Below are positions 16,935-57,839 of a stretch of DNA of 64,000 bases, piece by piece. The first letter of the stretch is position 1. Each line of letters starts with the position of its first letter. The notes under the pieces were generated by a model. The model made no database searches and had not been told where the DNA came from. It was given only the letters and a program-made list of their open reading frames with translations. The position numbers and the translations under genes are program-made. The stretch is from Rebecca billardiae RCC1528 (Eukaryota; Protista; Haptophyta), in the NCBI GenBank assembly GCA_965240325.2, contig OZ251239.1, positions 310,001 to 374,000 on the forward strand, read 5' to 3'.

Positions 16935-17663
16935 ATGGACAGGAAGATTGAGATCGGATACTGGGGGATCCGCGGCCTTGCGGCGCCGCTGCGCATGATG
17001 TGCGTGTACAAGTCGGCAAACTGGGTGGACGTCGCCTACAACACCTCACGCAAGGCGGATGGCAGCTGGGACCAGGACGGCTGGTTCGAGGAGGCTAAGC
17101 CCAAACTGCGCGAGATGAACCCCCTCATCAACCTGCCATACGTGAAGACGGGCGACGACGAGATCGTGTCGCAGTCGAACGCGTGCCTGCTCTACCTCTC
17201 CCGCCGCTTCGGCCTCGCCGGTCTGACAGAGCGTGAGCAGAGCGACAACGAGCAGTGCCTCTTCCAGGTCTTCGATCTTCGTAACGACCACATCGCTCTC
17301 GTGTACACGGACTCTGAGCTCGAGAGCGCGGAGAGCCCCACCGCGCACTTTGACGCCAACAAGGGCGCGTACCTCGAGAGCACGGTGCCGACGCACTACG
17401 CCAAGTTCGAGGCGTGGCTGGGGAAGTACGGCCGCAAGTTCCTGGTCAAGGACGAGCCGCTCGCCGCGGACTTCCACCTGTGGGAGATGCTCGACCAGCA
17501 CGAGGCCTTGGCGAAGAGTCTCAGCAAGCCGTCGCTGCTGGACGGCTACCCGCAGCTCAAACGGTACTACGCGGACTTCCGGTCCCTCCCGCAGATGAAG
17601 CCCTACTTCGACTCGCCGATGAGCAAGTACCCCATCAACCTGCCCATGGCTACGTTCATGTAG
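16935..17663 (+). CDS. glutathione S-transferase, mu-like
   Basis: IGYWGIRGLAAPLR, NLPY, SQSNA, mu-loop-like WDQDGWFEEAK; in-frame upstream ATG at 16848 could add a 29-aa targeting peptide. Confidence 0.9.
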   Translation: MDRKIEIGYWGIRGLAAPLRMMCVYKSANWVDVAYNTSRKADGSWDQDGWFEEAKPKLREMNPLINLPYVKTGDDEIVSQSNACLLYLSRRFGLAGLTEREQSDNEQCLFQVFDLRNDHIALVYTDSELESAESPTAHFDANKGAYLESTVPTHYAKFEAWLGKYGRKFLVKDEPLAADFHLWEMLDQHEALAKSLSKPSLLDGYPQLKRYYADFRSLPQMKPYFDSPMSKYPINLPMATFM

Positions 17664-18861
17664 GCCCCGTGTTGAACTGCGGCTGACGTGGATGGGAAGC
17701 ACGCGCGACGATGACACTGCTGCGGACTAGTCGGCGCGCTGATGATATACAGGCCAATCGCGGGCAATAAGAAGTCAGAGGTCTCACGGCTAGTTTCGGT
17801 TTCTTAGCCGTTCGGTAGCCCGAGCGCCTACGGAGTCTCCGTTTCTTAGCTAGGTCCGCCCGCCGCGCAGGCGCGGGGCGGGCGCAGGGGGGCAGAGCCT
17901 CTCCGCAGTCGGAGCCCCCCGCCGAGTGGCCGCTGACGGTCTTTAGGCCCGGCCGGCGAGGCGCCGAGAAAATTTTGGCGGGCTTTTTTGAGCAAATCTG
18001 GCATATGATGTTGCATGGATGCTGCGGTGCACTGGCCAGGAGTCAGTCATCAGGAGAAGTCGGGCCTTGGCCTGTACTCGTAGTCGGGCCGCGCACCGCG
18101 TCCCCGACGCGGGCCGACTGCGGCCTCGCCCTCGGCGGACCACTCCGCACTCGTCAGCCGGGACGACGTAGTCCCGGGTTCTTAGTGTGACTATGCGTAT
18201 AGCGCGAACCAGCCAATCGCTAGTCTCAGTTTCTAGGCCAGATCCGCAGATAGCAAGCCCCAGTTTCTTAACGTGACAGCTCCCGTTATTGCCCGCGATT
18301 GCCTGTATGTATGATGATGCTCGGACAGCTCCGGGTAACTGCGTTGCACTGATGATTATTGACGATATTGATATGATTCTTGAATGATGAGTGATGACCG
18401 CGCTGCCGAGAGCACTCACACTACATATATATGTATATATACACATATATATAATATACGTCTCACTCGGAAGTCGCGCAGACCGCTCGTCGAGCCGAGT
18501 AGACTCTGAGTTAGTAGTCGCCATGTCTCGGACTCGGTCCGAGATATGCATATCATATAGTTATTGCATGATGCTCAATCAGCATCAAATAATCTGTCAA
18601 TCCTCATGCGGCGTAGACGACCCGGACCGATCGGTACTGCGCGATGCAGGCTAGCTCAAGTCTGAGTGAGACTGAACGTGCCGTGCAGCACGCGGCCACG
18701 AGTGGCCTGCCAGTCAGTCGCTCAGGCGCTGTCAGCGTCGCCGGCGCCGCCCGGCGCGCAGCCTACCCGAGCAGCAGCAGCATCTTCTCAGACGAATCAG
18801 AATTCAGAATATTGTTCGATCATCATCATCGGATGATATCCACATCAGTCATCAGCGCAGA

Positions 18862-45132: not shown

Positions 45133-46152
45133 ATGCCGCATGTCATCGTAACACTTGGGTCCTAGAGCTCTTCACTCTTCAGGAGTGGACTCTCCGAAGT
45201 AGCGGCAGCGCACGGCTGAACATGAACATCGGCAGCTCGGGGTGCGCAGCCTCGCGGGAGCCGTGTGGGTAGTTCGGGTCAGTGAGATCTGCATCTCACT
45301 CTGATTAGTATTGACGTCATCAACCTCAAACTACAAGTATCTCAATAAGGTCTGGCGCTCTGCAGTGGCGGATGCCAGCTGAAACTGGGGCTTTTGGCCC
45401 AGTTTGCGATGGCACAGTGGGGGGCTTCGCGGGTCAGTAAACTGGGGAAAAGCCTCAGTTTCAGATGGCACGCGCCCACTGCGGCCGTGCCATCGCAAAC
45501 TGGGCCGAATCGCCCAGTTTGCGTGCGGGGACGCACTGCGGCCGGCTGCAACTTGGCTCAGCATGGGGCAGCTGTCCACAGCCCAGGCGGGGCGTCACCG
45601 CCTGCGGGCCGCCGGTGGGCAGGGCCGACGGCGTCGCAGAGCTCATGCGTGGGAGCGGCGCGTTGAGAAGGCAACCAAGGTCGAGAAGGAGGGGGCAAGG
45701 CCGGCAAGCAGCAGGGGCCACCGGTACGTTCGTACATGCCTCCACACCGGTGCACATCACCCTTGCTCGCGGCCGTGACCTGTGCTGGCACTCACCTCAT
45801 CATCGCCCACCATGCAGTGGCGGCCGAGCTAAGGCGAATACTCACAGGCACCGAACACGCATCGGCGGTGCCCACTGGTGCTGGCATGCTGTCCTCTACT
45901 TGCTGTCGGACAGCAAGCGGAGACGGCACCGCCGCAGCTGCGAGCGGGTGAGGTGCTGCTCTGCTCAGCGAGGCTGAGAGGCTGAGCACGGATCACGGAT
46001 GGTGAGCCCTGGTCTCTCAACGCATCCAGGAGAGCAGTTGGTGCATAACTGTGCTCAGGCGTGCAGGACCAACCATCCGGTGCTGCTTCAAGCACCCGCG
46101 CCAACAGCGGCGGTACTCAACTCCACGCTGCTCATGCGGCCACACAGCTGCA

Positions 46153-48900
46153 GGGATGGTGCCACGGCGGGCGGCGGCGGTCGACGCAGCTGTCAGCTCG
46201 GCGGTGCGCGCCCGAGGGGCCTAGGCGACGAACGCGCCGAGCGCGGTGTGGCTGCTCGCTTCGCCCAGCGCGCGCGAGCCGCTGCCATCGGGTGCCGCTG
46301 CGCCCGCGCCCAGCGCGGGCAGCAGCAGCTGTACTCAACTCCTCGCCGAGTGCGGCGGCAGCAGCAGGGATGGTGCCACGGCGGGCGGCGGCGGTCGCTG
46401 CAGCTGGCAGCTCGGTGGTGCGCGCCCGAGGAGCCTGGGCGCTGGGCGCACCGAGCGCGGTGACGCTGCTCGCCTCGCCCAGCGCGCTGGAGCCGCTGCC
46501 ACCGGGCGCCGCTGCGCCCGCGCCCAGCCGGGGCAGCAGCAGCTGCGCTCGACTCCGCGCCGAGTGCGGCGGCAGCAGCGGGGATGGTGCCACGGCGGGC
46601 GGCGGCGGTCGCTGGAGCTGGCAGCTCGGTGGTGCCTGCCCGATGGGCCTGGGCGCTGGGCGCACCGAGCGCGGTGACGCTGCTCGCCTCGCCCAACGCG
46701 CTCGAGCCGCTGCCATCGGGCGCTGCGCTGCCCGCGCCCAGCTTGGGCAGCAGCAGCTGCGCTCGACTCCGCGCCGAGTGCGGCGGCAGCAGCGGGGATG
46801 GTGCCACGGCGGGCGGCGGCGGTCGCTGCAGCTGGCAGCTCGGTGGTGCCTGCCCGATGGGCCTGGGCGCTGGGCGCACCGAGCGCGGTGACGCTGCTCG
46901 CCTCGCCCAACGCGCTGGAGCCGCTGCCATCGGGCGCTGCGCTGCCCGCGCCCAGCTTGGGCAGCAGCAGCTGCGCTCGACTCCGCGCCGAGTGCGGCGG
47001 CAGCAGCAGGGATGGTGACACGGCGGGCGGCGGCGGTCGCTGGAGCTGGCAGCTCGGTGGTGTGCGCCCGAGGAGCCTGGGCGCTGGGCGCACCGAGCGC
47101 GGTGACGCTGCTCGCCTCGCCCAGCGCGCTGGAGCCGCTGCCATCGGGCGCTGCTGCGCCCGCGCCCAGCTTGGGCAGCAGCAGCTGCGCTCGACTCCGC
47201 GCCGAGTGCGGCGGCAGCAGCGGGGATGGTGCCACGGCGGGCTGTGGCAGGTGCTGGAGCTGGCAGCTCGGTGGTGCGCGCCCGAGGAGCCTGGGCGCTG
47301 GGCGCACCGAGCGCGGTGACGCTGCTCGCCTCGCCCAGCGCGCTCGAGCCGCTGCCATCGGGCGCTGCTGCGCCCGCGCCCAGCCGGGGCAGCAGCAGCT
47401 GCGCTCGACTCCGCGCCGCGTGCGGCGGCAGCAGCAGGGATGGTGCCACGGCGGGCGGTGGCGGTCGCTGGAGCTGGCAGCTCGGTGGTGCGCGCCCGAG
47501 GAGCCTGGGCGCTGGGCGCACCGAGCGCGGTGACGCTGCTCGCCTCGCCCAACGCGCTGGAGCCGCTGCCATCGGGCGCGGCTGCGCCCGCGCCCAGCTT
47601 GGGCAGCAGCAGCTGCGCTCGACTCCGCGCCGAGTGCGGCGGTAGCAGCAGGGATGGTGCCACGGCGGGCGGCGGCGGTCGCTGGAGCTGGCAGCTCGGT
47701 GGTGCGCGCCCGAGGAGCCTGGGCGCTGGGCGCACCGAGCGCGGTGACGCTGCTCGCCTCGCCCAGCGCGCTCGAGCCGCTGCCACCGGGCGCGGCTGCG
47801 CCCGCGCCCAGCTTGGGCAGCAGCAGCTGCGCTCGACTCCGCGCCGAGTGCGGCGGCAGCAGCAGGGATGGTGCCACGGCGGGCGGCGGCGGTCGCTGGA
47901 GCTGGCAGCTCGGTGGTGCGCGCCCGAGGAGCCTGGGCGCTGGGCGCACCGAGCGCGGTGACGCTGCTCGCCTCGCCCAACGCGCTGGAGCCGCTGCCAT
48001 CGGGCGCTGCTGCGCCCGCGCCCAGCCGGGGCAGCAGCAGCTGCGCTCGACTCCGCGCCGCGTGCGGCGGCAGCAGCAGGGATGGTGCCACGGCGGGCGG
48101 CGGCGGTCGCTGCAGCTGAAAGCTCGTTGGTGCCTGCCCGATGGGCCTGGGCGCTGGGCGCACCGAGCGCGGTGACGCTGCTCGCCTCGCCCAGCGCGCT
48201 CGAGCCGCTGTCACCAGGCGCCGCTGCGCCCGCGCCCAGCCGGGGCAGCAGCAGCTGCGCTCGACTCCGCGCCGCGTGCGGCGGCAGCAGCAGGGATGGT
48301 GCCACGGCGGGCGGCGGCGGTCGCTGCAGCTGAAAGCTCGTTGGTGCCTGCCCGATGGGCCTGGGCGCTGGGCGCACCGAGCGCGGTGACGCTGCTCGCC
48401 TCGCCCAGCGCGCTCGAGCCGCTGTCACCAGGCGCTGCTGCGCCCGCGCCCAGCCGGGGCAGCTGCAGCTGCGCTCGACTCCGCGCCGAGTGCGGCGGCA
48501 GCAGCAGGGATGGTGCCACGGCGGGCTGTGGCAGTCGCTGGAGCTGGCAGCTCGGTGGTGCGCGCCCGAGGAGCCTGGGCGCTGGGCGCACCGAGCGCGG
48601 TGACGCTGCTCGCCTCGCCCAGCGCGCTCGAGCCGCTGCCATCGGGCGCTGCTGCGCCCGCGCCCAGCTTGGGCAGCAGCAGCTGCGCTCGACTCCGCGC
48701 CGAGTGCGGCGGCAGCAGCAGGGATGGTGACACGGCGGGCGGCGGCGGTCGCTGGAGCTGGCAGCTCGGTGGTGCGCGCCCGAGGAGCCTGGGCGCTGGG
48801 CGCACCGAGCGCGGTGACGCTGCTCGCCTCGCCCAGCGCGCTGGTGAGTCGCTGCCACCCGGCGCTGCGCTGTCTGCGCCCAGCCGGAGCAGCTGCAGCA
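46153..48900 (+). repeat. tandem array of 214-bp units (13 unit starts, innermost degenerate)
   Basis: the ATG in GGGATGGTG recurs every 214 bp from 46156 to 48724. Confidence 0.97.
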
Positions 48901-49734
48901 GCTCAGATCAGCACCGTCGCGACTGCTCGGTCGATGCGTATGATGAACTAGATGAGTGACCCGCTGACTCGCTGTCAGCAGTCGCAGCCTCGCAGCGCGG
49001 CCGGCCGCCGCGTTAACCCGCCGGTAAACGACCGCGCGCGGTCGGTTATTGCGGGGGCGGGGCAGCCGGTCAGAGCCGCGAGCCGAGCGGCTACTGAGTA
49101 CTGTGTCATCACCGTCCGGTCTCCGACTCCGGAGTCGCGTCCCGCCGTCCGATCGGGGATATTCGGGCGATCCGGTTACGCGGACCCGATCTCCGAGGAG
49201 TTGGTCATAATGTACTATATATATATGCAGCAGACCGACAACTGGTATAGAGGGCTCATGGCACTGCATGCGCAGCCGCAGCAGCTATATATATATATAT
49301 ATAATGCGCGCCGCTCGGTCATCGGAGCAGAGTGATGAATTCGTCTGGCGTCATCTGCGCTACTATACTTATTATAAATTCTTAGCTGCGCTCAAATTCG
49401 CGCCGTCATATTCGGAGCAGACTACGGTATTCGATGCTGATGATGATGCTGATGATGCCGATGTATCGCGCGACGACGATATAGCAGTCGTCCATATCCG
49501 CCAATACCGGCCGGGCTGTGCTCGGCACTCCGCGACTCGCGAGTCCGGATCACCTACGGGCACGGCACTACTCCAGCCCCGAGTACGACCACTGACTACG
49601 CCATCCGAGGCATCGGCACGGCTGGGCTGCTGCCTGCGGCCCGGCACAAGCGACTCGCTCATCTACTTCACACGCAGCGACCGAGCAGCAGTCGCAGTAA
49701 TCTGCTGAGCAGCAGCAGTTAATCACCAGCCTGC

Positions 49735-52523
49735 TGCTGCTGCTGCCTGCCACGACACGGCACGCGGCGTGGAGTCGAGCGCAGAGTCTGCAGCTGCCCG
49801 GGCGGTGCAGCAGCATCAGATGGCAGCGGCTCGAGCGCGGTGGGCGAGGCGAGCAGCGTCACCGCGCTCAGTGCGTCCACCGCCCAGGCCCCTGAAGCAC
49901 GAACCGCCGGGGTGTCAGCTCCAGCGACCGCCGCCGGCCGCCGTGGCACCATCCCCGCTGCTGCCGCCGCACGCGGTGGGAAGTCGAGCGCAGCTGCTGC
50001 TGCCCAAGCGGGGCGCAGGCGCAGCAGCATCGGATGGCAGCGGCTCCAGCGCGCTGCGGGAAGCGAGCGGCGTCACCGCGCTCGGTGCGCCAAATGCCTA
50101 GCCCCCTCGGGCGCGCACCGCCGGGCTTTGAGCTCCAGCGACCGCCGCCGCCAGACGTGGCACCATCCCTGCTGCTGCTGCCGCACGCGGCGCGGAGTTG
50201 AGCGCAGCTGCTGCTGCCCCGGCTGGGCGCGGGCGCAGCAGCGCCCGATGGCAGCGGCTCGAGCGCGCTGGGCGAGGCGAGCAGCGTCACCGCGCTCGGT
50301 GCGCCCAGCGCCCAGGCTCCTCGGGCGCGCACCACCGAGCTGCCAGCTCCAGCACCTGCCACAGCCCGCCGTGGCACCATCCCCGCTGCTGCCGCCGCAC
50401 TCGGCGCGGAGTCGAGCGCAGCTGCTGCTGCCCAAGCTGGGCGCGGGCGCAGCAGCGCCCGATGGCAGCGGCTCGAGCGCGCTGGGCGAGGCGAGCAGCG
50501 TCACCGCGCTCGGTGCGCCCAGCGCCCAGGCTCCTCGGGCGCGCACCACCGAGCTGCCAGCTCCAGCGACTGCCACAGCCCGCCGTGGCACCATCCCTGC
50601 TGCTGCCGCCGCACGCGGCGCGGAGTCGAGCGCAGCTGCTGCTGCCCAAGCTGGGCGCGGGCAGCGCAGCGCCCGATGGCAGCGGCTCCAGCGCGTTGGG
50701 CGAGGCGAGCAGTGTCACCGCGCTCGGTGCGCCCAGCGCCCAGGCCCATCGGGCAGGCACCAACGAGCTTTCAGCTGCAGCGACCGCCGCCGCCCGCCGT
50801 GGCACCATCCCTGCTGCTGCCGCCGCACGCGGCGCGGAGTCGAGCGCAGCTGCTGCTGCCCCGGCTGGGCGCGGGCGCAGCAGCGCCCGGTGGCAGCGGC
50901 TCGAGCGCGCTGGGCGAGGCGAGCAGCGTCACCGCGCTCGGTGCGCCCAGCGCCCAGGCTCCTCGGGCGCGCACCACCGAGCTGCCAGCTCCAGCGACCG
51001 CCGCCGCCCGCCGTGGCACCATCCCTGCTGCTACCGCCGCACTCGGCGCGGAGTCGAGCGCAGCTGCTGCTGCCCAAGCTGGGCGCGGGCAGCGCAGCGC
51101 CCGATGGCAGCGGCTCCAGCGCGTTGGGCGAGGCGAGCAGCGTCACCGCGCTCGGTGCGCCCAGCGCCCAGGCTCCTCGGGCGCGCACCACCGAGCTGCC
51201 AGCTCCAGCGACTGCCACCGCCAGACGTGGCACCATCCCTGCTGCTGCTGCCGCACGCGGCGCGGAGTTGAGCGCAGCTGCTGCTGCCCCGGCTGGGCGC
51301 GGGCGCAGCAGCGCCCGATGGCAGCGGCTCGAGCGCGCTGGGCGAGGCGAGCAGCGTCACCGCGCTCGGTGCGCCCAGCGCCCAGGCTCCTCGGGCGCGC
51401 ACCACCGAGCTGCCAGCTCCAGCACCTGCCACAGCCCGCCGTGGCACCATCCCCGCTGCTGCCGCCGCACTCGGCGCGGAGTCGAGCGCAGCTGCTGCTG
51501 CCCAAGCTGGGCGCGGGCGCAGCAGCGCCCGATGGCAGCGGCTCGAGCGCGCTGGGCGAGGCGAGCAGCGTCACCGCGCTCGGTGCGCCCAGCGCCCAGG
51601 CTCCTCGGGCGCACACCACCGAGCTGCCAGCTCCAGCGACCGCCGCAGCCCGCCGTGTCACCATCCCTGCTGCTGCCGCCGCACTCGGCGCGGAGTCGAG
51701 CGCAGCTGCTGCTGCCCAAGCTGGGCGCGGGCAGCGCAGCGCCCGATGGCAGCGGCTCGAGCGCGTTGGGCGAGGCGAGCAGCGTCACCGCGCTCGGTGC
51801 GCCCAGCGCCCAGGCCCATCGGGCAGGCACCACCGAGCTGCCAGCTCCAGCGACCGCCGCCGCCCGCCGTGGCACCATCCCTGCTGCTGCCGCCGCACTC
51901 GGCGCGGAGTCGAGCGCAGCTGCTGCTGCCCAAGCTGGGCGCGGGCAGCGCAGCGCCCGATGGCAGCGGCTCGAGCGCGTTGGGCGAGGCGAGCAGCGTC
52001 ACCGCGCTCGGTGCGCCCAGCGCCCAGGCCCCTCGGGCGCGCACCACCGAGCTGCCAGCTCCAGCGACCGCCGCCGCCCGCCGTGGCACCATCCCCGCTG
52101 CTGCCGCCGCACTCGGCGCGGAGTCGAGCGCAGCTGCTGCTGCCCCGGCTGGGCGCGGGCGCAGCGGCGCCCGGTGGCAGCGGCTCCAGCGCGCTGGGCG
52201 AGGCGAGCAGCGTCACCGCGCTCGGTGCGCCCAGCGCCCAGGCTCCTCGGGCGCGCACCACCGAGCTGCCAGCTGCAGCGACTGCCGCAGCCCGCCGTGG
52301 CACCATCCCTGCTGCTGCCGCCGCACTCGGCGAGGAGTTGAGTACAGCTGCTGCTGCCCGCGCTGGGCGCGGGCGCAGCGGCACCCGATGGCAGCGGCTC
52401 GCGCGCGCTGGGCGAAGCGAGCAGCCACACCGCGCTCGGCGCGTTCGTCGCCTAGGCCCCTCGGGCGCGCACCGCCGAGCTGACAGCTGCGTCGACCGCC
52501 GCCGCCCGCCGTGGCACCATCCC
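49735..52523 (-). repeat. mirror tandem array of 214-bp units (13 unit starts)
   Basis: CACCAT ends every 214 bp from 49952 to 52520. Confidence 0.97.
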
Positions 52524-53541
52524 TGCAGCTGTGTGGCCGCATGAGCAGCGTGGAGTTGAGTACCGCCGCTGTTGGCGCGGGTGCTTGAAGCAGCACCGGA
52601 TGGTTGGTCCTGCACGCCTGAGCACAGTTATGCACCAACTGCTCTCCTGGATGCGTTGAGAGACCAGGGCTCACCATCCGTGATCCGTGCTCAGCCTCTC
52701 AGCCTCGCTGAGCAGAGCAGCACCTCACCCGCTCGCAGCTGCGGCGGTGCCGTCTCCGCTTGCTGTCCGACAGCAAGTAGAGGACAGCATGCCAGCACCA
52801 GTGGGCACCGCCGATGCGTGTTCGGTGCCTGTGAGTATTCGCCTTAGCTCGGCCGCCACTGCATGGTGGGCGATGATGAGGTGAGTGCCAGCACAGGTCA
52901 CGGCCGCGAGCAAGGGTGATGTGCACCGGTGTGGAGGCATGTACGAACGTACCGGTGGCCCCTGCTGCTTGCCGGCCTTGCCCCCTCCTTCTCGACCTTG
53001 GTTGCCTTCTCAACGCGCTGCTCCCACGCATGAGCTCTGCGACGCCGTCGGCCCTGCCCACCGGCGGCCCGCAGGCGGTGACGCCCCGCCTGGGCTGTGG
53101 ACAGCTGCCCTGTTGCCCCATGCTGAGCCAAGTTGCAGCCGGCCGCAGTGCGTCCCCGTGCACACGCAAACTGGGCGATTCGGCCCAGTTTGCGATGGCA
53201 CGGCCGCAGTGGGCGCGTGCCATCTGAAACTGAGGCTTTTCCCCAGTTTACTGACCCGCGAAGCCCCCCACTGTGCCATCGCAAACTGGGCCAAAAGCCC
53301 CAGTTTCAGCTGGCATCCGCCACTGCAGAGCGCCAAACCTGGCTGAGTATCTCGCCTGCCTGAGCTGTGTGCATGCGTCTCTTGTTCTTAGTAAACTGTA
53401 TTCGGTGAGTCGGTGACAACCAAATAACGTCGCGGAGATTCATACAGCAAGGGTGGCATACAGTATATTCCCAAAGTTCCTGTTCGATCAGGCCATCAGG
53501 GTTCGCGATGGGTGGTCTCAGGCCACGGCTGACTCAAAGAG

Positions 53542-55497
53542 ATGATGCGCGATCGATGGCCGTCCTCCCCCGCCCCGGCGGCGCTCGTGCTAGTGCTGCT
53601 GGCGACGGGCGCGCGGTGCGCGGCTCGCGGTGAGGAGGTGTGGTTCGACAGCCCCGTCGACCACTTCGACGCCGTCGCCAACGCCACTTTCCGCCAGCGC
53701 TGCCTGGTTGACGCGGCCGCACTCGGCCCGCGCGCCTCGGCGCCGCTCTTCCTGTACACGGGGAACGAGGGGCCGATCGAGGAGTTCGCGTCGAACGCCG
53801 GCTTCGTGTACGAGCTCGCCGCGCGTGCTGAGTTCCGCGCGCTCGTTGCCTTCTGCGAGCACCGCTACTACGGCAAGTCGCTGCCATTTGGCCGAGCCTC
53901 GTTTGCGCGCGAGCGCATCGGCAAGCTCTCCGTCGAGCAGGCGCTGGCGGACTTTGCGCTGCTCGTGCCGAAGCTCAAGCGCGCGCATGGCCTGCCAGAG
54001 CACGCGCCCGTCGTCGCATTCGGCGGCTCGTACGGCGGCATGCTCGCCGCGTGGCTGCGCCTCAAGTACCCCGCGGCCGTCGACGGCGCGATGGCCGCCT
54101 CTGCGCCGCTCGCGCTGCCAGTGGGGGCGCGCGCCAAGCCGGGCTTCTACGAGGCGGTGGGCGCAGACCTGCGCGGCGCCGACGGTGCGTGCCCGGTGCG
54201 CGTGCGCGCTGCCTTCGCCGAGCTCGGCCGCCTCTCGCGCGGCGACATGTGCGCGCGCGCAGAGCTCGGGCGCGCGCTCGGCCTTTGCGCGCCGCCGGAC
54301 GGCAGCGCCGCCTCAGCCGAGCTGCTACAGCTGTGGGCGCGCAACGCATTCGTCGTGCTCGCGATGTGCGACTACCCGTACCCGAGCAGCTTCCTCGCGC
54401 CGCTTCCCGCGTGGCCGATCGACGCCGCGTGCGCGGCGCTCGCGCGCGCCCCGTCGCCGCTGCTCGGCCTGCGCGGCGTACTGGAGCTTGCTTACGGCGG
54501 CGGTGGCGGCGGCACCGGCGGCGGCACCGGCGGCGGCACCGGCGGCGGCATCGGCGGCGGCATCGGCGACGACGGCTCGCACACCGCTGGCGCTGCTGCA
54601 CTCGCCGCTGGCGCGTGCGCTGATGCGCGCGCGAGTGCGCGTGCTGCTGTGCGCGCTGGCGGCGTGGGCGATGACGCGGGCAAGGGCGTGGCGGAAAGCT
54701 GGGCGGCGCTTGGCGCGCACGCGCGGGCGCACAGCACGGCGCGCACGGCACGCGCCGCGCGCAGGGCGGGCACGCGAGGCGCGGCTCCGCGCTGCCACGC
54801 GCCCGCCGCCGAGTACCGACCCTGCGCCGACCAGACTGGCTGCGGCGATGGCGACGCCGCGCTGGCGTGGGACTACCAGGTCTGCTCGGAGATGGCGCTC
54901 CTCGTCTCAACCGACAACGTAACCGACCCGTTCCCGCCGCGCCGGTGGGGTCTGGCTGAGCTGCGGGAGTACTGCCAGGCGACGTGGGGCGTCGCGCCGC
55001 GGCCGGAGTGGGCGCGCGTGGCGTTCGGCGGCACTCCGGAGGAGCCGGGCCGAGGCTTTGCGCGCGGGGGCAGCAACATCGCCTTCTCGAACGGGCTGCT
55101 TGACCCGTGCGCGCGCGCGCGCGCGTTCGCCACACCTTGTGCGAAATGGCTGGGCGACTGGGCTGGCCCAAGGCTGCCCGCCCCGCGCGCTGAGGCCGAG
55201 TGCGCGCGCGGCGCCCTCCGCCCCTGGCGTGTCCGCGCGCGCCTTGGCAGGTGGCACGGCGGCGGCTTCCTCAAGGGCCTCGGGCCGAGCATGCCGGCGG
55301 TGCTGCTGCCGCACGGTGCTCACCACCTCGACCTGCGCGCCGCGCACCCAGCCGACCCACCGAGCACGCGCGCGGCGCGTGAGAAGGAGCTTGGCCTCGT
55401 GCGGGCGTGGGTGCGCGAGGCGCGCGCGCGCGCGGCGCAGCCGCAGGCAGACGGCGGGCCAGGGCCGAGCGGAGCGGCGGCGACCCTCGCGGCGTGA
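53542..55497 (+). CDS. S28 serine peptidase (lysosomal Pro-X carboxypeptidase/DPP7-like); intron 55107-55250
   Basis: VDHF, YTGNEG, EHRYYGKS, GGSYGG, NGLLDP|WHGG after splicing, AHHLDLR; signal peptide. Confidence 0.93.
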   Translation: MMRDRWPSSPAPAALVLVLLATGARCAARGEEVWFDSPVDHFDAVANATFRQRCLVDAAALGPRASAPLFLYTGNEGPIEEFASNAGFVYELAARAEFRALVAFCEHRYYGKSLPFGRASFARERIGKLSVEQALADFALLVPKLKRAHGLPEHAPVVAFGGSYGGMLAAWLRLKYPAAVDGAMAASAPLALPVGARAKPGFYEAVGADLRGADGACPVRVRAAFAELGRLSRGDMCARAELGRALGLCAPPDGSAASAELLQLWARNAFVVLAMCDYPYPSSFLAPLPAWPIDAACAALARAPSPLLGLRGVLELAYGGGGGGTGGGTGGGTGGGIGGGIGDDGSHTAGAAALAAGACADARASARAAVRAGGVGDDAGKGVAESWAALGAHARAHSTARTARAARRAGTRGAAPRCHAPAAEYRPCADQTGCGDGDAALAWDYQVCSEMALLVSTDNVTDPFPPRRWGLAELREYCQATWGVAPRPEWARVAFGGTPEEPGRGFARGGSNIAFSNGLLDPCARARAFATPCAKWLGDWAGPRLPAPRAEAECARGALRPWRVRARLGRWHGGGFLKGLGPSMPAVLLPHGAHHLDLRAAHPADPPSTRAAREKELGLVRAWVREARARAAQPQADGGPGPSGAAATLAA

Positions 55498-55901: not shown

Positions 55902-57194
55902 CTACTCGTCCAGCCTCCCTGCGCCCACCACGGCGCCCTCCTCCGCGCCCGCACCGTCCGTCGGCGCGCTCGCCGCGAGCGCGAGCGCAGCCGCGACCAC
56001 GGCAGCGCCGCCCGCCTCCTGCGTGGTGAGCGTCTCGCCGAGCAGGGCGTACGCGCACAGCGCCGACCAGAGCGGCTGCGTGGTGTACACCAGGTTGGCG
56101 TCGGTCGCGCTGATCGGCCCGCCCTGCCCGTACGACTGCGCCCAGATCGTGTACGCACACGTGACGGCGCCGCACCACGCCGCGCTGCCGCCAAGTCGCA
56201 GCAGCGCGTCAGGCGGCAGGCTCGGCAGCTCGGCGGCAAAGGCGCGCGTGGCCACGGCGAGCTCACTGCCCGGGAGCAAGAAGAGCGCGGCGCCAAGCGC
56301 GGCGCTACCTAGCACCAGCTCGCTCAGCGCCTTGCGCACGGCGAGCGTGATCGGCGGCAGCGCGGGCGCGAGCGCGCTCAGCCGCAGCACGTGTGCGCTG
56401 TAGATCGCGGCGGCGCCGAGGACAAGGAGGTCACCGCTGCTCAGCAGGCTGCTGCCCGCCCATGCGGCAGCGTTGGCGGCGGCGGCGGGGTGCTCCTGCG
56501 CGGAGGACATGAGCACCACGCCGCCGAACGCGAGCGCGCACGCCGCCCACGTGCGCGCGGGCAGCTTGCCCAGCCCGCCGCTGAGCGCCGCCTGTCCGAG
56601 CGGCACGAGCAGCGTCGTCGTCTGCACGAGGAAGGCCGCACGGTCGGTCGGTACGGACTGCAGCCCGCGCACCTGCAGCTGGTTGGCGACGAAGAGGTAG
56701 CCGCCGAGCTCGAGGCCCGCGAGCCACGCCTTTGCGCCGCCAGCCCAGCCCGCCGCGTTCGCCGCCTCCGATGGCTGCGGCGGCGGCTGCGGTGGCGGCG
56801 CGCTTGCAAGAGCTGCGACAAGCAGGCAGCCGCTCGCGACGACATACTGGCCGAGCGCGATGAGGAGGCCGGGGACGGGCGGGTCGGTCGCCGCGGCGTA
56901 CGCAATCTTGACCGCCGGCGCGTACGTGCCCCACGCCATGGGCACGCTCACCAGCACGGCCAGCCGTGCAGCGCGCGAGCCGTCGAGGGGCGGCGGCGTG
57001 AGCAACGGCGCTCTCTCGTCCTCCGCATCGCTGCCGGCGTCGATCGAGGCGCGAGGCGCCAGCGCGCGTGCGCGCGGCGTCAAGCGTCTGATCGACAGCC
57101 CGCGGCATCCGCCGCCGCCGCCGGCTGCCTTGTGCGGCGCGCCGAGTTCGGCGGCGGCGAGCATCAGCACGAGCGTCAGCCCGTGCGGGCGCAT
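55902..57194 (-). CDS. EamA/DMT family transporter, probably plastid-targeted
   Basis: WGTYAP..K, AGLELGGYLF..LQVRGL..RAAFLVQTTTLLVP, AQSYGQ..ATDANLVYTTQPLWSA..LGE; signal peptide. Confidence 0.9.
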   Translation of the reverse strand: MRPHGLTLVLMLAAAELGAPHKAAGGGGGCRGLSIRRLTPRARALAPRASIDAGSDAEDERAPLLTPPPLDGSRAARLAVLVSVPMAWGTYAPAVKIAYAAATDPPVPGLLIALGQYVVASGCLLVAALASAPPPQPPPQPSEAANAAGWAGGAKAWLAGLELGGYLFVANQLQVRGLQSVPTDRAAFLVQTTTLLVPLGQAALSGGLGKLPARTWAACALAFGGVVLMSSAQEHPAAAANAAAWAGSSLLSSGDLLVLGAAAIYSAHVLRLSALAPALPPITLAVRKALSELVLGSAALGAALFLLPGSELAVATRAFAAELPSLPPDALLRLGGSAAWCGAVTCAYTIWAQSYGQGGPISATDANLVYTTQPLWSALCAYALLGETLTTQEAGGAAVVAAALALAASAPTDGAGAEEGAVVGAGRLDE

Positions 57195-57410
57195 GCTGAT
57201 GCCTCCGTGATGCGCTGCCGAAAAATCGCCCCCTCCGTCCTCCGGCGTGCAGCGACCGGACGCACAGGACGCACGCCACGACGAGGCCGACCGGCATCGT
57301 GGGTCCTGATCTCGAGCCGCTGCAGCGGTCCCGCCTCACGCCTGGGCCTTGTCCGCGCCAGCGACTTCCGCCGGAGGTTGGGCGGCGGCGGCGACGGCCA
57401 GCGGCGCGCG

Positions 57411-57839
57411 ATGAGCTACCTGCTGCCGCACCTCAACTCGGGGTGGGCCGTGGACCAGGCCATCCTCTCCGAGGAGGACCGCGTGGTCGTCATCCGCTTC
57501 GGCCACGACTACGACCCCGTGTGCATGCGGATGGACGAGACGCTCTACTCGATCGCGGAGCTCGTGAAGAACTACGCCGTGGTGTACCTCGTGGATATCA
57601 CGCAGGTGCCCGATTTCAATTCGATGTACGAGCTCTACGATCCGTGCACGGTGATGTTCTTCTTCCGCAACAAGCACATCATGATCGACCTTGGCACAGG
57701 CAACAACAACAAGATCAACTGGGCGCTGACCGACAAGCAGGAGATGATCGACATTATTGAGACGATATATCGTGGCGCGCGGAAAGGGCGTGGTCTGGTG
57801 GTCAGCCCGAAGGACTACTCCACCAAGTACAGGTACTAG
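57411..57839 (+). CDS. DIM1: U5 snRNP thioredoxin-like protein Dim1/TXNL4A
   Basis: 142 aa from MSYLLPHL..VDQAILSEEDRVVVIRFGHD to GRGLVVSPKDYSTKYRY, a highly conserved sequence. Confidence 0.99.
   Translation: MSYLLPHLNSGWAVDQAILSEEDRVVVIRFGHDYDPVCMRMDETLYSIAELVKNYAVVYLVDITQVPDFNSMYELYDPCTVMFFFRNKHIMIDLGTGNNNKINWALTDKQEMIDIIETIYRGARKGRGLVVSPKDYSTKYRY

Follow-up and report, generated by a model that had tools for sequence, protein, structure and literature searches.

The FB elements of Drosophila duplicate 9 bp of their target on insertion and have a Mutator-related coding partner. In Galileo, target duplications of 7 bp go together with tandem repeats of ~210 bp that lie inside the inverted repeats (PMC3573991). 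For haptophytes or microalgae, no relevant publication on foldback elements was found in the searchable literature. The subject of the present analysis is a 64,000-nucleotide stretch of the genome of the haptophyte Rebecca billardiae RCC1528 (hereafter the window), which corresponds to bases 310001-374000 of contig 22 (OZ251239.1) in a 72-Mb assembly of 41 contigs, and in which a foldback element of 8,003 bp occupies positions 45343-53345 (unless another contig is named, positions are those of the window). This element is a real, very young, non-autonomous copy of a foldback DNA transposon, and the most useful new details that it offers are the dynamics of its repeat arrays from copy to copy and the conversion of one arm by the other.

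The best inverted pair joins 45566-48842 to 49834-53110, two arms of 3,277 nt that are 96% complementary, and in the outermost 185 nt (45341-45525 and 53163-53347) complementarity reaches 98%. Within the arms, Tandem Repeats Finder (TRF) reported two arrays of a 214-bp unit, with 12.9 copies and 94% matches at 46145-48899, and 12.7 copies and 92% matches at 49807-52531; mapping of a reference unit gave 13 + 13 units, mirrored across the two arms. The core that separates them measures ~860-900 bp, has a GC fraction of 0.52-0.57 at 49000-49600 vs ~0.78 in the arrays, and contains no significant internal palindrome of its own. The element starts at 45343 with CAATAAGG, its other end is CAGCCAGG on the opposite strand, finishing at 53345, and immediately outside both termini lies a perfect direct repeat, AGTATCT (45336-45342 and 53346-53352). 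An initial annotation, made from the letters of the window, had described an 8-kb foldback palindrome with inverted unique arms of ~800 bp, mirror arrays of thirteen 214-bp units, a more AT-rich core, and AGTATCT directly outside the ends. Every one of these structural statements proved correct, the unique flanking domains being 802 and 814 bp long.

The genome-wide search for other copies and their target-site duplications, proposed in that annotation, recovered ~11 copies of the subfamily at unrelated sites on nine contigs. The terminal 220 bp recurs at 98% identity on contigs 36, 32, 19 (twice), 16 (twice), 15, 17 and 34, and its matches fall into inverted pairs spaced 6.7-13 kb apart. The two termini are never alike: every copy has one of A type (CAATAAGGTC) and one of B type (CAGCCAGGTT), positions 3-5 always differ between them, and the flanks diverge exactly at CA; the low similarity between the outermost 10 nt, remarked on earlier, is real and constant in the family. 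Duplications of 7 bp were perfect within the copy and differed between copies in all 11 pairs read, which comprise nine subfamily-1 pairs and two elements of a second subfamily, and a chance match of 7 bp would be expected in about 1 in 16,000 per pair. At ~0.6 GC on average, the flanks of the insertion sites are poorer in GC than the window as a whole (mean 0.67).

These copies also dispose of a technical explanation that had been named from the start, namely a fold-back artefact of the assembly, as would arise from a chimeric long read or from an inverted duplication joined in error. A single near-perfect palindrome of 8 kb has the classic shape of such an artefact, and yet it can be ruled out, because the element is multi-copy with site-specific duplications. 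The same structure stands at ~11 unrelated sites with constant termini and copy-specific unit counts, and with perfect duplications that differ between copies in every pair read, which leaves the artefact a vanishingly small probability. With long inverted arms that take up most of its length, internal tandem repeats and a short non-coding middle, and with multiple copies, constant ends and target-site duplications, the element shows what is expected of the foldback class.

Two observations on the ends of individual copies may be added. In the copies on contigs 17 and 34, the A terminus carries a 5-nt insertion (CAATA-CTGTA-AGG), and perfect 7-bp duplications still lie outside CAATA; the outermost terminal bases therefore tolerate change. 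On contig 7, a solo A-end fragment of 326 bp stands without a partner end, which may be a truncated copy or a product of aborted repair.

The features of the window copy and of its immediate neighbourhood are as follows.

45336..45342, no strand assigned: left 7-bp target-site duplication AGTATCT, the same 7-mer being found directly outside both termini
45343..45370, plus strand: A terminus, starting CAATAAGGTC; ~28 bp kept between subfamilies, A-type terminus in all copies
45343..46144, plus strand: flanking domain of arm A, 802 bp, unique, 99.8-100% identical to sister A arms
45382-45405, 45439-45462 and 45497-45520, plus strand: subterminal AAACTGGG palindromes of arm A
46145..48899, plus strand: array of arm A, 13 units of 214 bp
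46145..47432, plus strand: tract of probable conversion between the arms, where arm A begins with six units of arm B type
48900..49806, plus strand: unique, AT-richer, non-coding core (middle domain), with no Pfam match and no palindrome
49807..52531, minus strand: array of arm B, 13 units of 214 bp, inverted
52532..53345, minus strand: flanking domain of arm B, 814 bp, with B terminus CAGCCAGGTT on the minus strand
53168-53191, 53226-53249 (degenerate partner) and 53283-53306: mirrored AAACTGGG palindromes of arm B
53346..53352, no strand assigned: right 7-bp target-site duplication AGTATCT
53542..55497, plus strand: host gene for a Peptidase_S28 serine carboxypeptidase (PF05577, E = 2e-67)

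The subterminal regions are marked by the motif AAACTGGG, which occurs at 12 sites in the window vs 0.5 expected. Ten of the 12 fall in the two outer 200 bp, five per arm, where they are arranged as inverted pairs, and three palindromes based on the motif lie 40-180 bp from each end, vs 40-70 bp for the transposase (THAP) binding sites characteristic of the P superfamily; the sites at 17018 and 18259 are unrelated to the foldback element. The terminal 218 nt fold far better than shuffled sequences (z-score -8.8). The motifs in the outer 200 bp had been likened to transposase-binding sites, and they are indeed present as described, but, being private to one subfamily, they are not a general binding site that an autonomous element of the assembly would have as well.

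How recently the family has moved can be read from the ~800-bp flanking domains. Among six copies (on contigs 22, 36, 19a, 19b, 16a and 34), arm A compared with arm A is 99.8-100% identical, as is arm B compared with arm B, and arm A compared with arm B is 99.2-99.4% identical. Because A-A and B-B comparisons are closer than A-B comparisons, the two arms had become different before one master gave rise to a very recent burst of copies. The copies on contigs 15 and 17 represent older lineages (97.7-98.5%), with larger and different cores of 2.7-2.9 kb. With respect to the A and B ends, the core is oriented alike in all seven copies that have it, and there is therefore no sign of flip-flop inversion.

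The arrays are less uniform. In copies that are otherwise near-identical, the unit counts of the two arms are 13/13, 14/13, 14/7, 6/14, 12/13 and 10/4; with flanks so similar and 4-14 units per arm, the arrays must change far faster than by point mutation. When units are labelled by sequence variant, allowing up to two differences, a common frame (A B C ... K E Q R) emerges for the B arms, in which some units have been lost or duplicated internally, and the opening of most A arms is S T H T U. The window copy is the exception: its A arm opens with A B C C D E, the pattern of B arms. Over its first 1.34 kb, this array is 99.1% identical, without gaps, to the copy's own B arm, vs only 96%, with 10 gap openings, to sister A arms; over the distal 1.47 kb, identity is 99.5% to the A arm on contig 16 and 95% to the B arm of the window copy. 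This comparison is most simply explained if ~1.3 kb of arm A was, as is probable, overwritten by arm B through arm-to-arm conversion, to which the strong symmetry of the window copy would be due. Near-identical copies with varied unit counts provide a natural series from which rates of array expansion, contraction and arm conversion could be derived.

The window subfamily belongs to a wider family. Subfamily 2 consists of two elements of 5.6-5.7 kb, on contigs 25 and 35, with arm flanks of 595-607 bp that are 100% complementary and with 4 + 10 units that are ~85% identical to those of the window element. Its termini, CAGTAAGG at the A position and CAGCCAGG, show the same A/B asymmetry as the window subfamily, and 7-bp duplications are again present. 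Between the subfamilies, ~28 terminal bp are conserved, positions 6-28 of the A terminus being nearly invariant, and the arms diverge thereafter. A degenerate 18-nt form of the terminus has 111 genome matches with up to two mismatches, vs 42 for the reversed control, and many of the matches form plus/minus pairs 5.5-15 kb apart; a third subfamily variant is represented by 17 exact ends. Long pairs of termini lie on contig 11 (61726-77125), contig 15 (1773864-1787891 and 1800683-1811297), contig 10 (1155896-1166213) and contig 23 (456355-466119).

This wider family bears on the suggestion in the initial annotation that the locus is a giant non-autonomous foldback element seeding a satellite. 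Its first part holds, the element being a large non-autonomous foldback DNA transposon; the second would be indicated by arrays outside the element that are longer than those inside it, but none of more than 14 units was seen, and every array that could be placed belongs to a foldback element. A conserved 24-mer of the 214-bp unit has at least 651 matches in the genome with up to three mismatches (338 forward and 313 reverse; the control has 0), and the units amount to ~140 kb, or 0.2% of the genome. Many of the unit clusters are mirrored on the two strands and lie between pairs of termini, and about eight have no recognised terminus nearby, among them those on contig 15 at ~2,004,600, contig 18 at ~2,095,500, contig 8 at ~2,628,500, and contig 5 at ~796,200 and ~2,481,900. 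The balance between strands and the mirrored clusters among those listed fit residence in foldback elements.

No coding capacity was found in the family. The open reading frames (ORFs) of the window copy, including one of 833 codons across the array of arm B, have no Pfam match, in accordance with the earlier observation that no transposase ORF is present, and the window element matches no Rfam family. It might be supposed that the element is nevertheless autonomous, with an unrecognised protein encoded in its core or arms, as ORFs of up to 833 aa run across the arrays and the copies on contigs 15 and 17 have cores of 2.7-2.9 kb. However, Pfam scans of these larger cores and of the subfamily-2 cores were as empty as that of the window copy, and the cores tested yielded no remnant of a primase. 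The cores are not conserved, differing between lineages of the family, and the sequence of the window core occurs only in seven copies of its subfamily, with no match elsewhere in the genome. The long frames across the arrays are discounted because 214 cannot be divided by three and because frames of such length are to be expected in sequence with 78% GC. Autonomy is accordingly very improbable, and for annotation it follows that long ORFs across the 214-bp arrays are not genes and should not be taken as such.

Several copies carry additional DNA. Those on contigs 32 and 16 share extra DNA (4.6 kb and ~6.6 kb) located 38 bp inside the B terminus, with direct repeats a few hundred bp long in its interior but with neither a target-site duplication nor a coding signal. 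The 4.6-kb segment on contig 32 was considered as the coding part of the family and rejected: it is repetitive, lacks a third-position GC signal, gave an empty Pfam scan, and is a nested element without target duplication. The extra DNA of both contigs is probably a non-autonomous split-repeat (DIRS/PAT-like) element. As the composite on contig 32 has its own 7-bp duplication, it transposed after the internal insertion arose. The copy on contig 34 contains a nested foldback miniature inverted-repeat transposable element (MITE) of ~1.05 kb with GAG...CTC ends in the subterminal region of arm A, and in its core an insertion of ~2.2 kb at TA, starting CAGGCAATCGCGGGCAATAA. A near-identical CAGGCAATCGCGGGCAATAA terminus is found on the minus strand of the window at ~18280-18330, and a copy of this element, probably Tc1/mariner-like, may lie near 18.3 kb.

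It is highly probable that the window element is a young copy of a non-autonomous foldback family that moves by cut-and-paste, that its arrays are dynamic, and that a P-type driver is the likeliest. An enzyme acting in trans would recognise two slightly different termini of ~28 bp, CA[A/G]TAAGGT... and CAGCCAGGTT..., and insertion proceeds through a 7-bp staggered cut, as the duplications show. The arrays grow and shrink quickly, through slippage or unequal exchange, and, as the comparison of copies indicates, can take over sequence of the other arm when conversion occurs within the element; the middle domain is a non-coding remnant.

As to the enzyme itself, a P-superfamily (Galileo-like) transposase is the most likely driver, a best guess that may equally well prove wrong and that implies no claim of membership. 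The label is given because of the 7-bp duplication and the CA ends, and nothing else; the superfamily is characterized by duplications of 7-8 bp, and 7 bp was found in every case. Transposases of P type have an RNase H fold into which a GTP-binding part is inserted, and usually a THAP domain. A P-type transposase gene does exist in the genome, on the minus strand of contig 21 (1532845-1534479), within an open frame of 1,322 codons. It matches PF21787 with 32.9 bits, and the motifs SD.PHLIK..RN and D..EH.FG of its protein align to the structure of the Drosophila P transposase (6p5a). Two JGI proteins that are ~30% identical to it carry both PF21787 and PF21788, and scans of metagenomes found no further relatives. 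By Pfam and protein searches it is the sole canonical P-type transposase gene in the assembly: PF21787 has no other genome match, PF21789 gave a weak match within the same gene only, and searches of the genome with PF12017, PF21788 and PF12596 found no match. The frame (region 1532470-1535865) is intact and is followed by an AT-rich tail.

Several results weigh against a P-type driver, and against this gene in particular. No transposase is linked to the foldback ends. The contig 21 gene is single-copy in searches with its own protein and the two database relatives. The 3.4 kb read around it contains neither the terminal motif nor AAACTGGG, and no terminus within two mismatches lies near it on contig 21; the THAP/P-type or hAT partner anticipated in the initial annotation is therefore putative. 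Palindromes of the form AACTGGG-N8-CCCAGTT number 41 in the genome, all of them in the subfamily's own copies; because they are confined in this way, no autonomous element in the assembly shares them. The target sites of the copies read have no clear consensus. Moreover, duplications of 7 bp, although typical, are not exclusive to the P superfamily, and some Mutator and hAT families overlap in this respect.

The main rival, accordingly, is the same foldback transposon with a Mutator-type or hAT-type driver. Typical target duplications are 9 bp for Drosophila FB and 8 bp for hAT, and those of Mutator and FB are ~9 bp (8-10); here, 7 bp was found in all 11 pairs, and the only hAT dimerisation-domain match in the genome, on contig 17, is broken, so that neither an 8-bp duplication nor a working hAT partner was found. 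What lends this rival some weight is the lack of any P-type link for the family, and also that foldback elements of flies and nematodes are mostly linked to Mutator (PMC4079207; PMC3169594), although in Tetris, for instance, the duplications are 8-10 bp (PMC4079207) vs exactly 7 bp here. On balance, a Mutator-type or hAT-type enzyme appears unlikely, a P-type one remaining preferred.

More speculatively, the P-type gene on contig 21, possibly retained by the host, could drive in trans both this family and the genome's other foldback families with 7-bp duplications. In that case the gene-less foldback copies, numbering dozens to hundreds, would depend on a single gene, and the 214-bp arrays would serve as additional platforms for binding or synapsis. 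Both the first of these proposals and its extension to the arrays are rather improbable; if true, they would place a Galileo-like P system far outside animals.

The position of the element raises the question of whether the host has put it to use. The ATG of the Peptidase_S28 gene sits 196 bp downstream of the element end, and a transcribed element would form a hairpin of 3.6 kb in perfect register, so the long hairpin might serve as a source of small RNA or as a regulator of the peptidase gene, a role that would be compatible with its being a transposon. Against this, the copies are scattered over unrelated sites, and in copies so young no selection would be visible yet; such a takeover is regarded as a slim prospect. 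Further downstream, a long ORF on the plus strand (56391-57839) that ends in a DIM1 domain overlaps an EamA transporter ORF on the minus strand (55902-57194); in the plus frame, no more than the final ~130 codons resemble a real DIM1 gene, and the overlap is an example of the spurious long ORFs that arise at such GC content.

Among the described systems, Drosophila FB resembles the present element in having long arms of tandem repeats around a variable middle, and differs in its target duplication, which the 7 bp found here does not fit. Galileo, a member of the P superfamily in Drosophila, is closer, in particular its non-autonomous copies that consist of two terminal inverted repeats (TIRs) and the F subfamily of D. 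mojavensis: they share the 7-bp duplications, the very long arms and the internal repeats of ~210 bp, the number of which varies independently between the arms of one copy (PMC3573991). As here, short termini are conserved between Galileo subfamilies and the rest of the arm is subfamily-specific (PMC3688188), and most copies are without transposase (PMC3573991, PMC3688188). Unlike Galileo, in which an arm has 0-4 repeats and a THAP/P-type transposase is known from nearly complete copies, the present family has 4-14 units per arm, no coding copy was found for it, its termini differ constantly at positions 3-5, and its host is a haptophyte alga instead of an insect. Tetris of Drosophila virilis is likewise built from a flanking domain (up to 866 bp), ~220-bp repeats in variable number and a middle that does not code for protein, and no autonomous copy of it is known (PMC4079207). 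Its duplications, however, are 8-10 bp, it is assigned to Mutator (PMC4079207), and its repeats also form free satellite arrays of kb size; of the present unit, the arrays that could be placed lie inside foldback elements. The design of flanking domain, ~210-220-bp array and non-coding middle is thus already known from Galileo and Tetris, and the same design exists, very recently active, in a GC-rich haptophyte alga.

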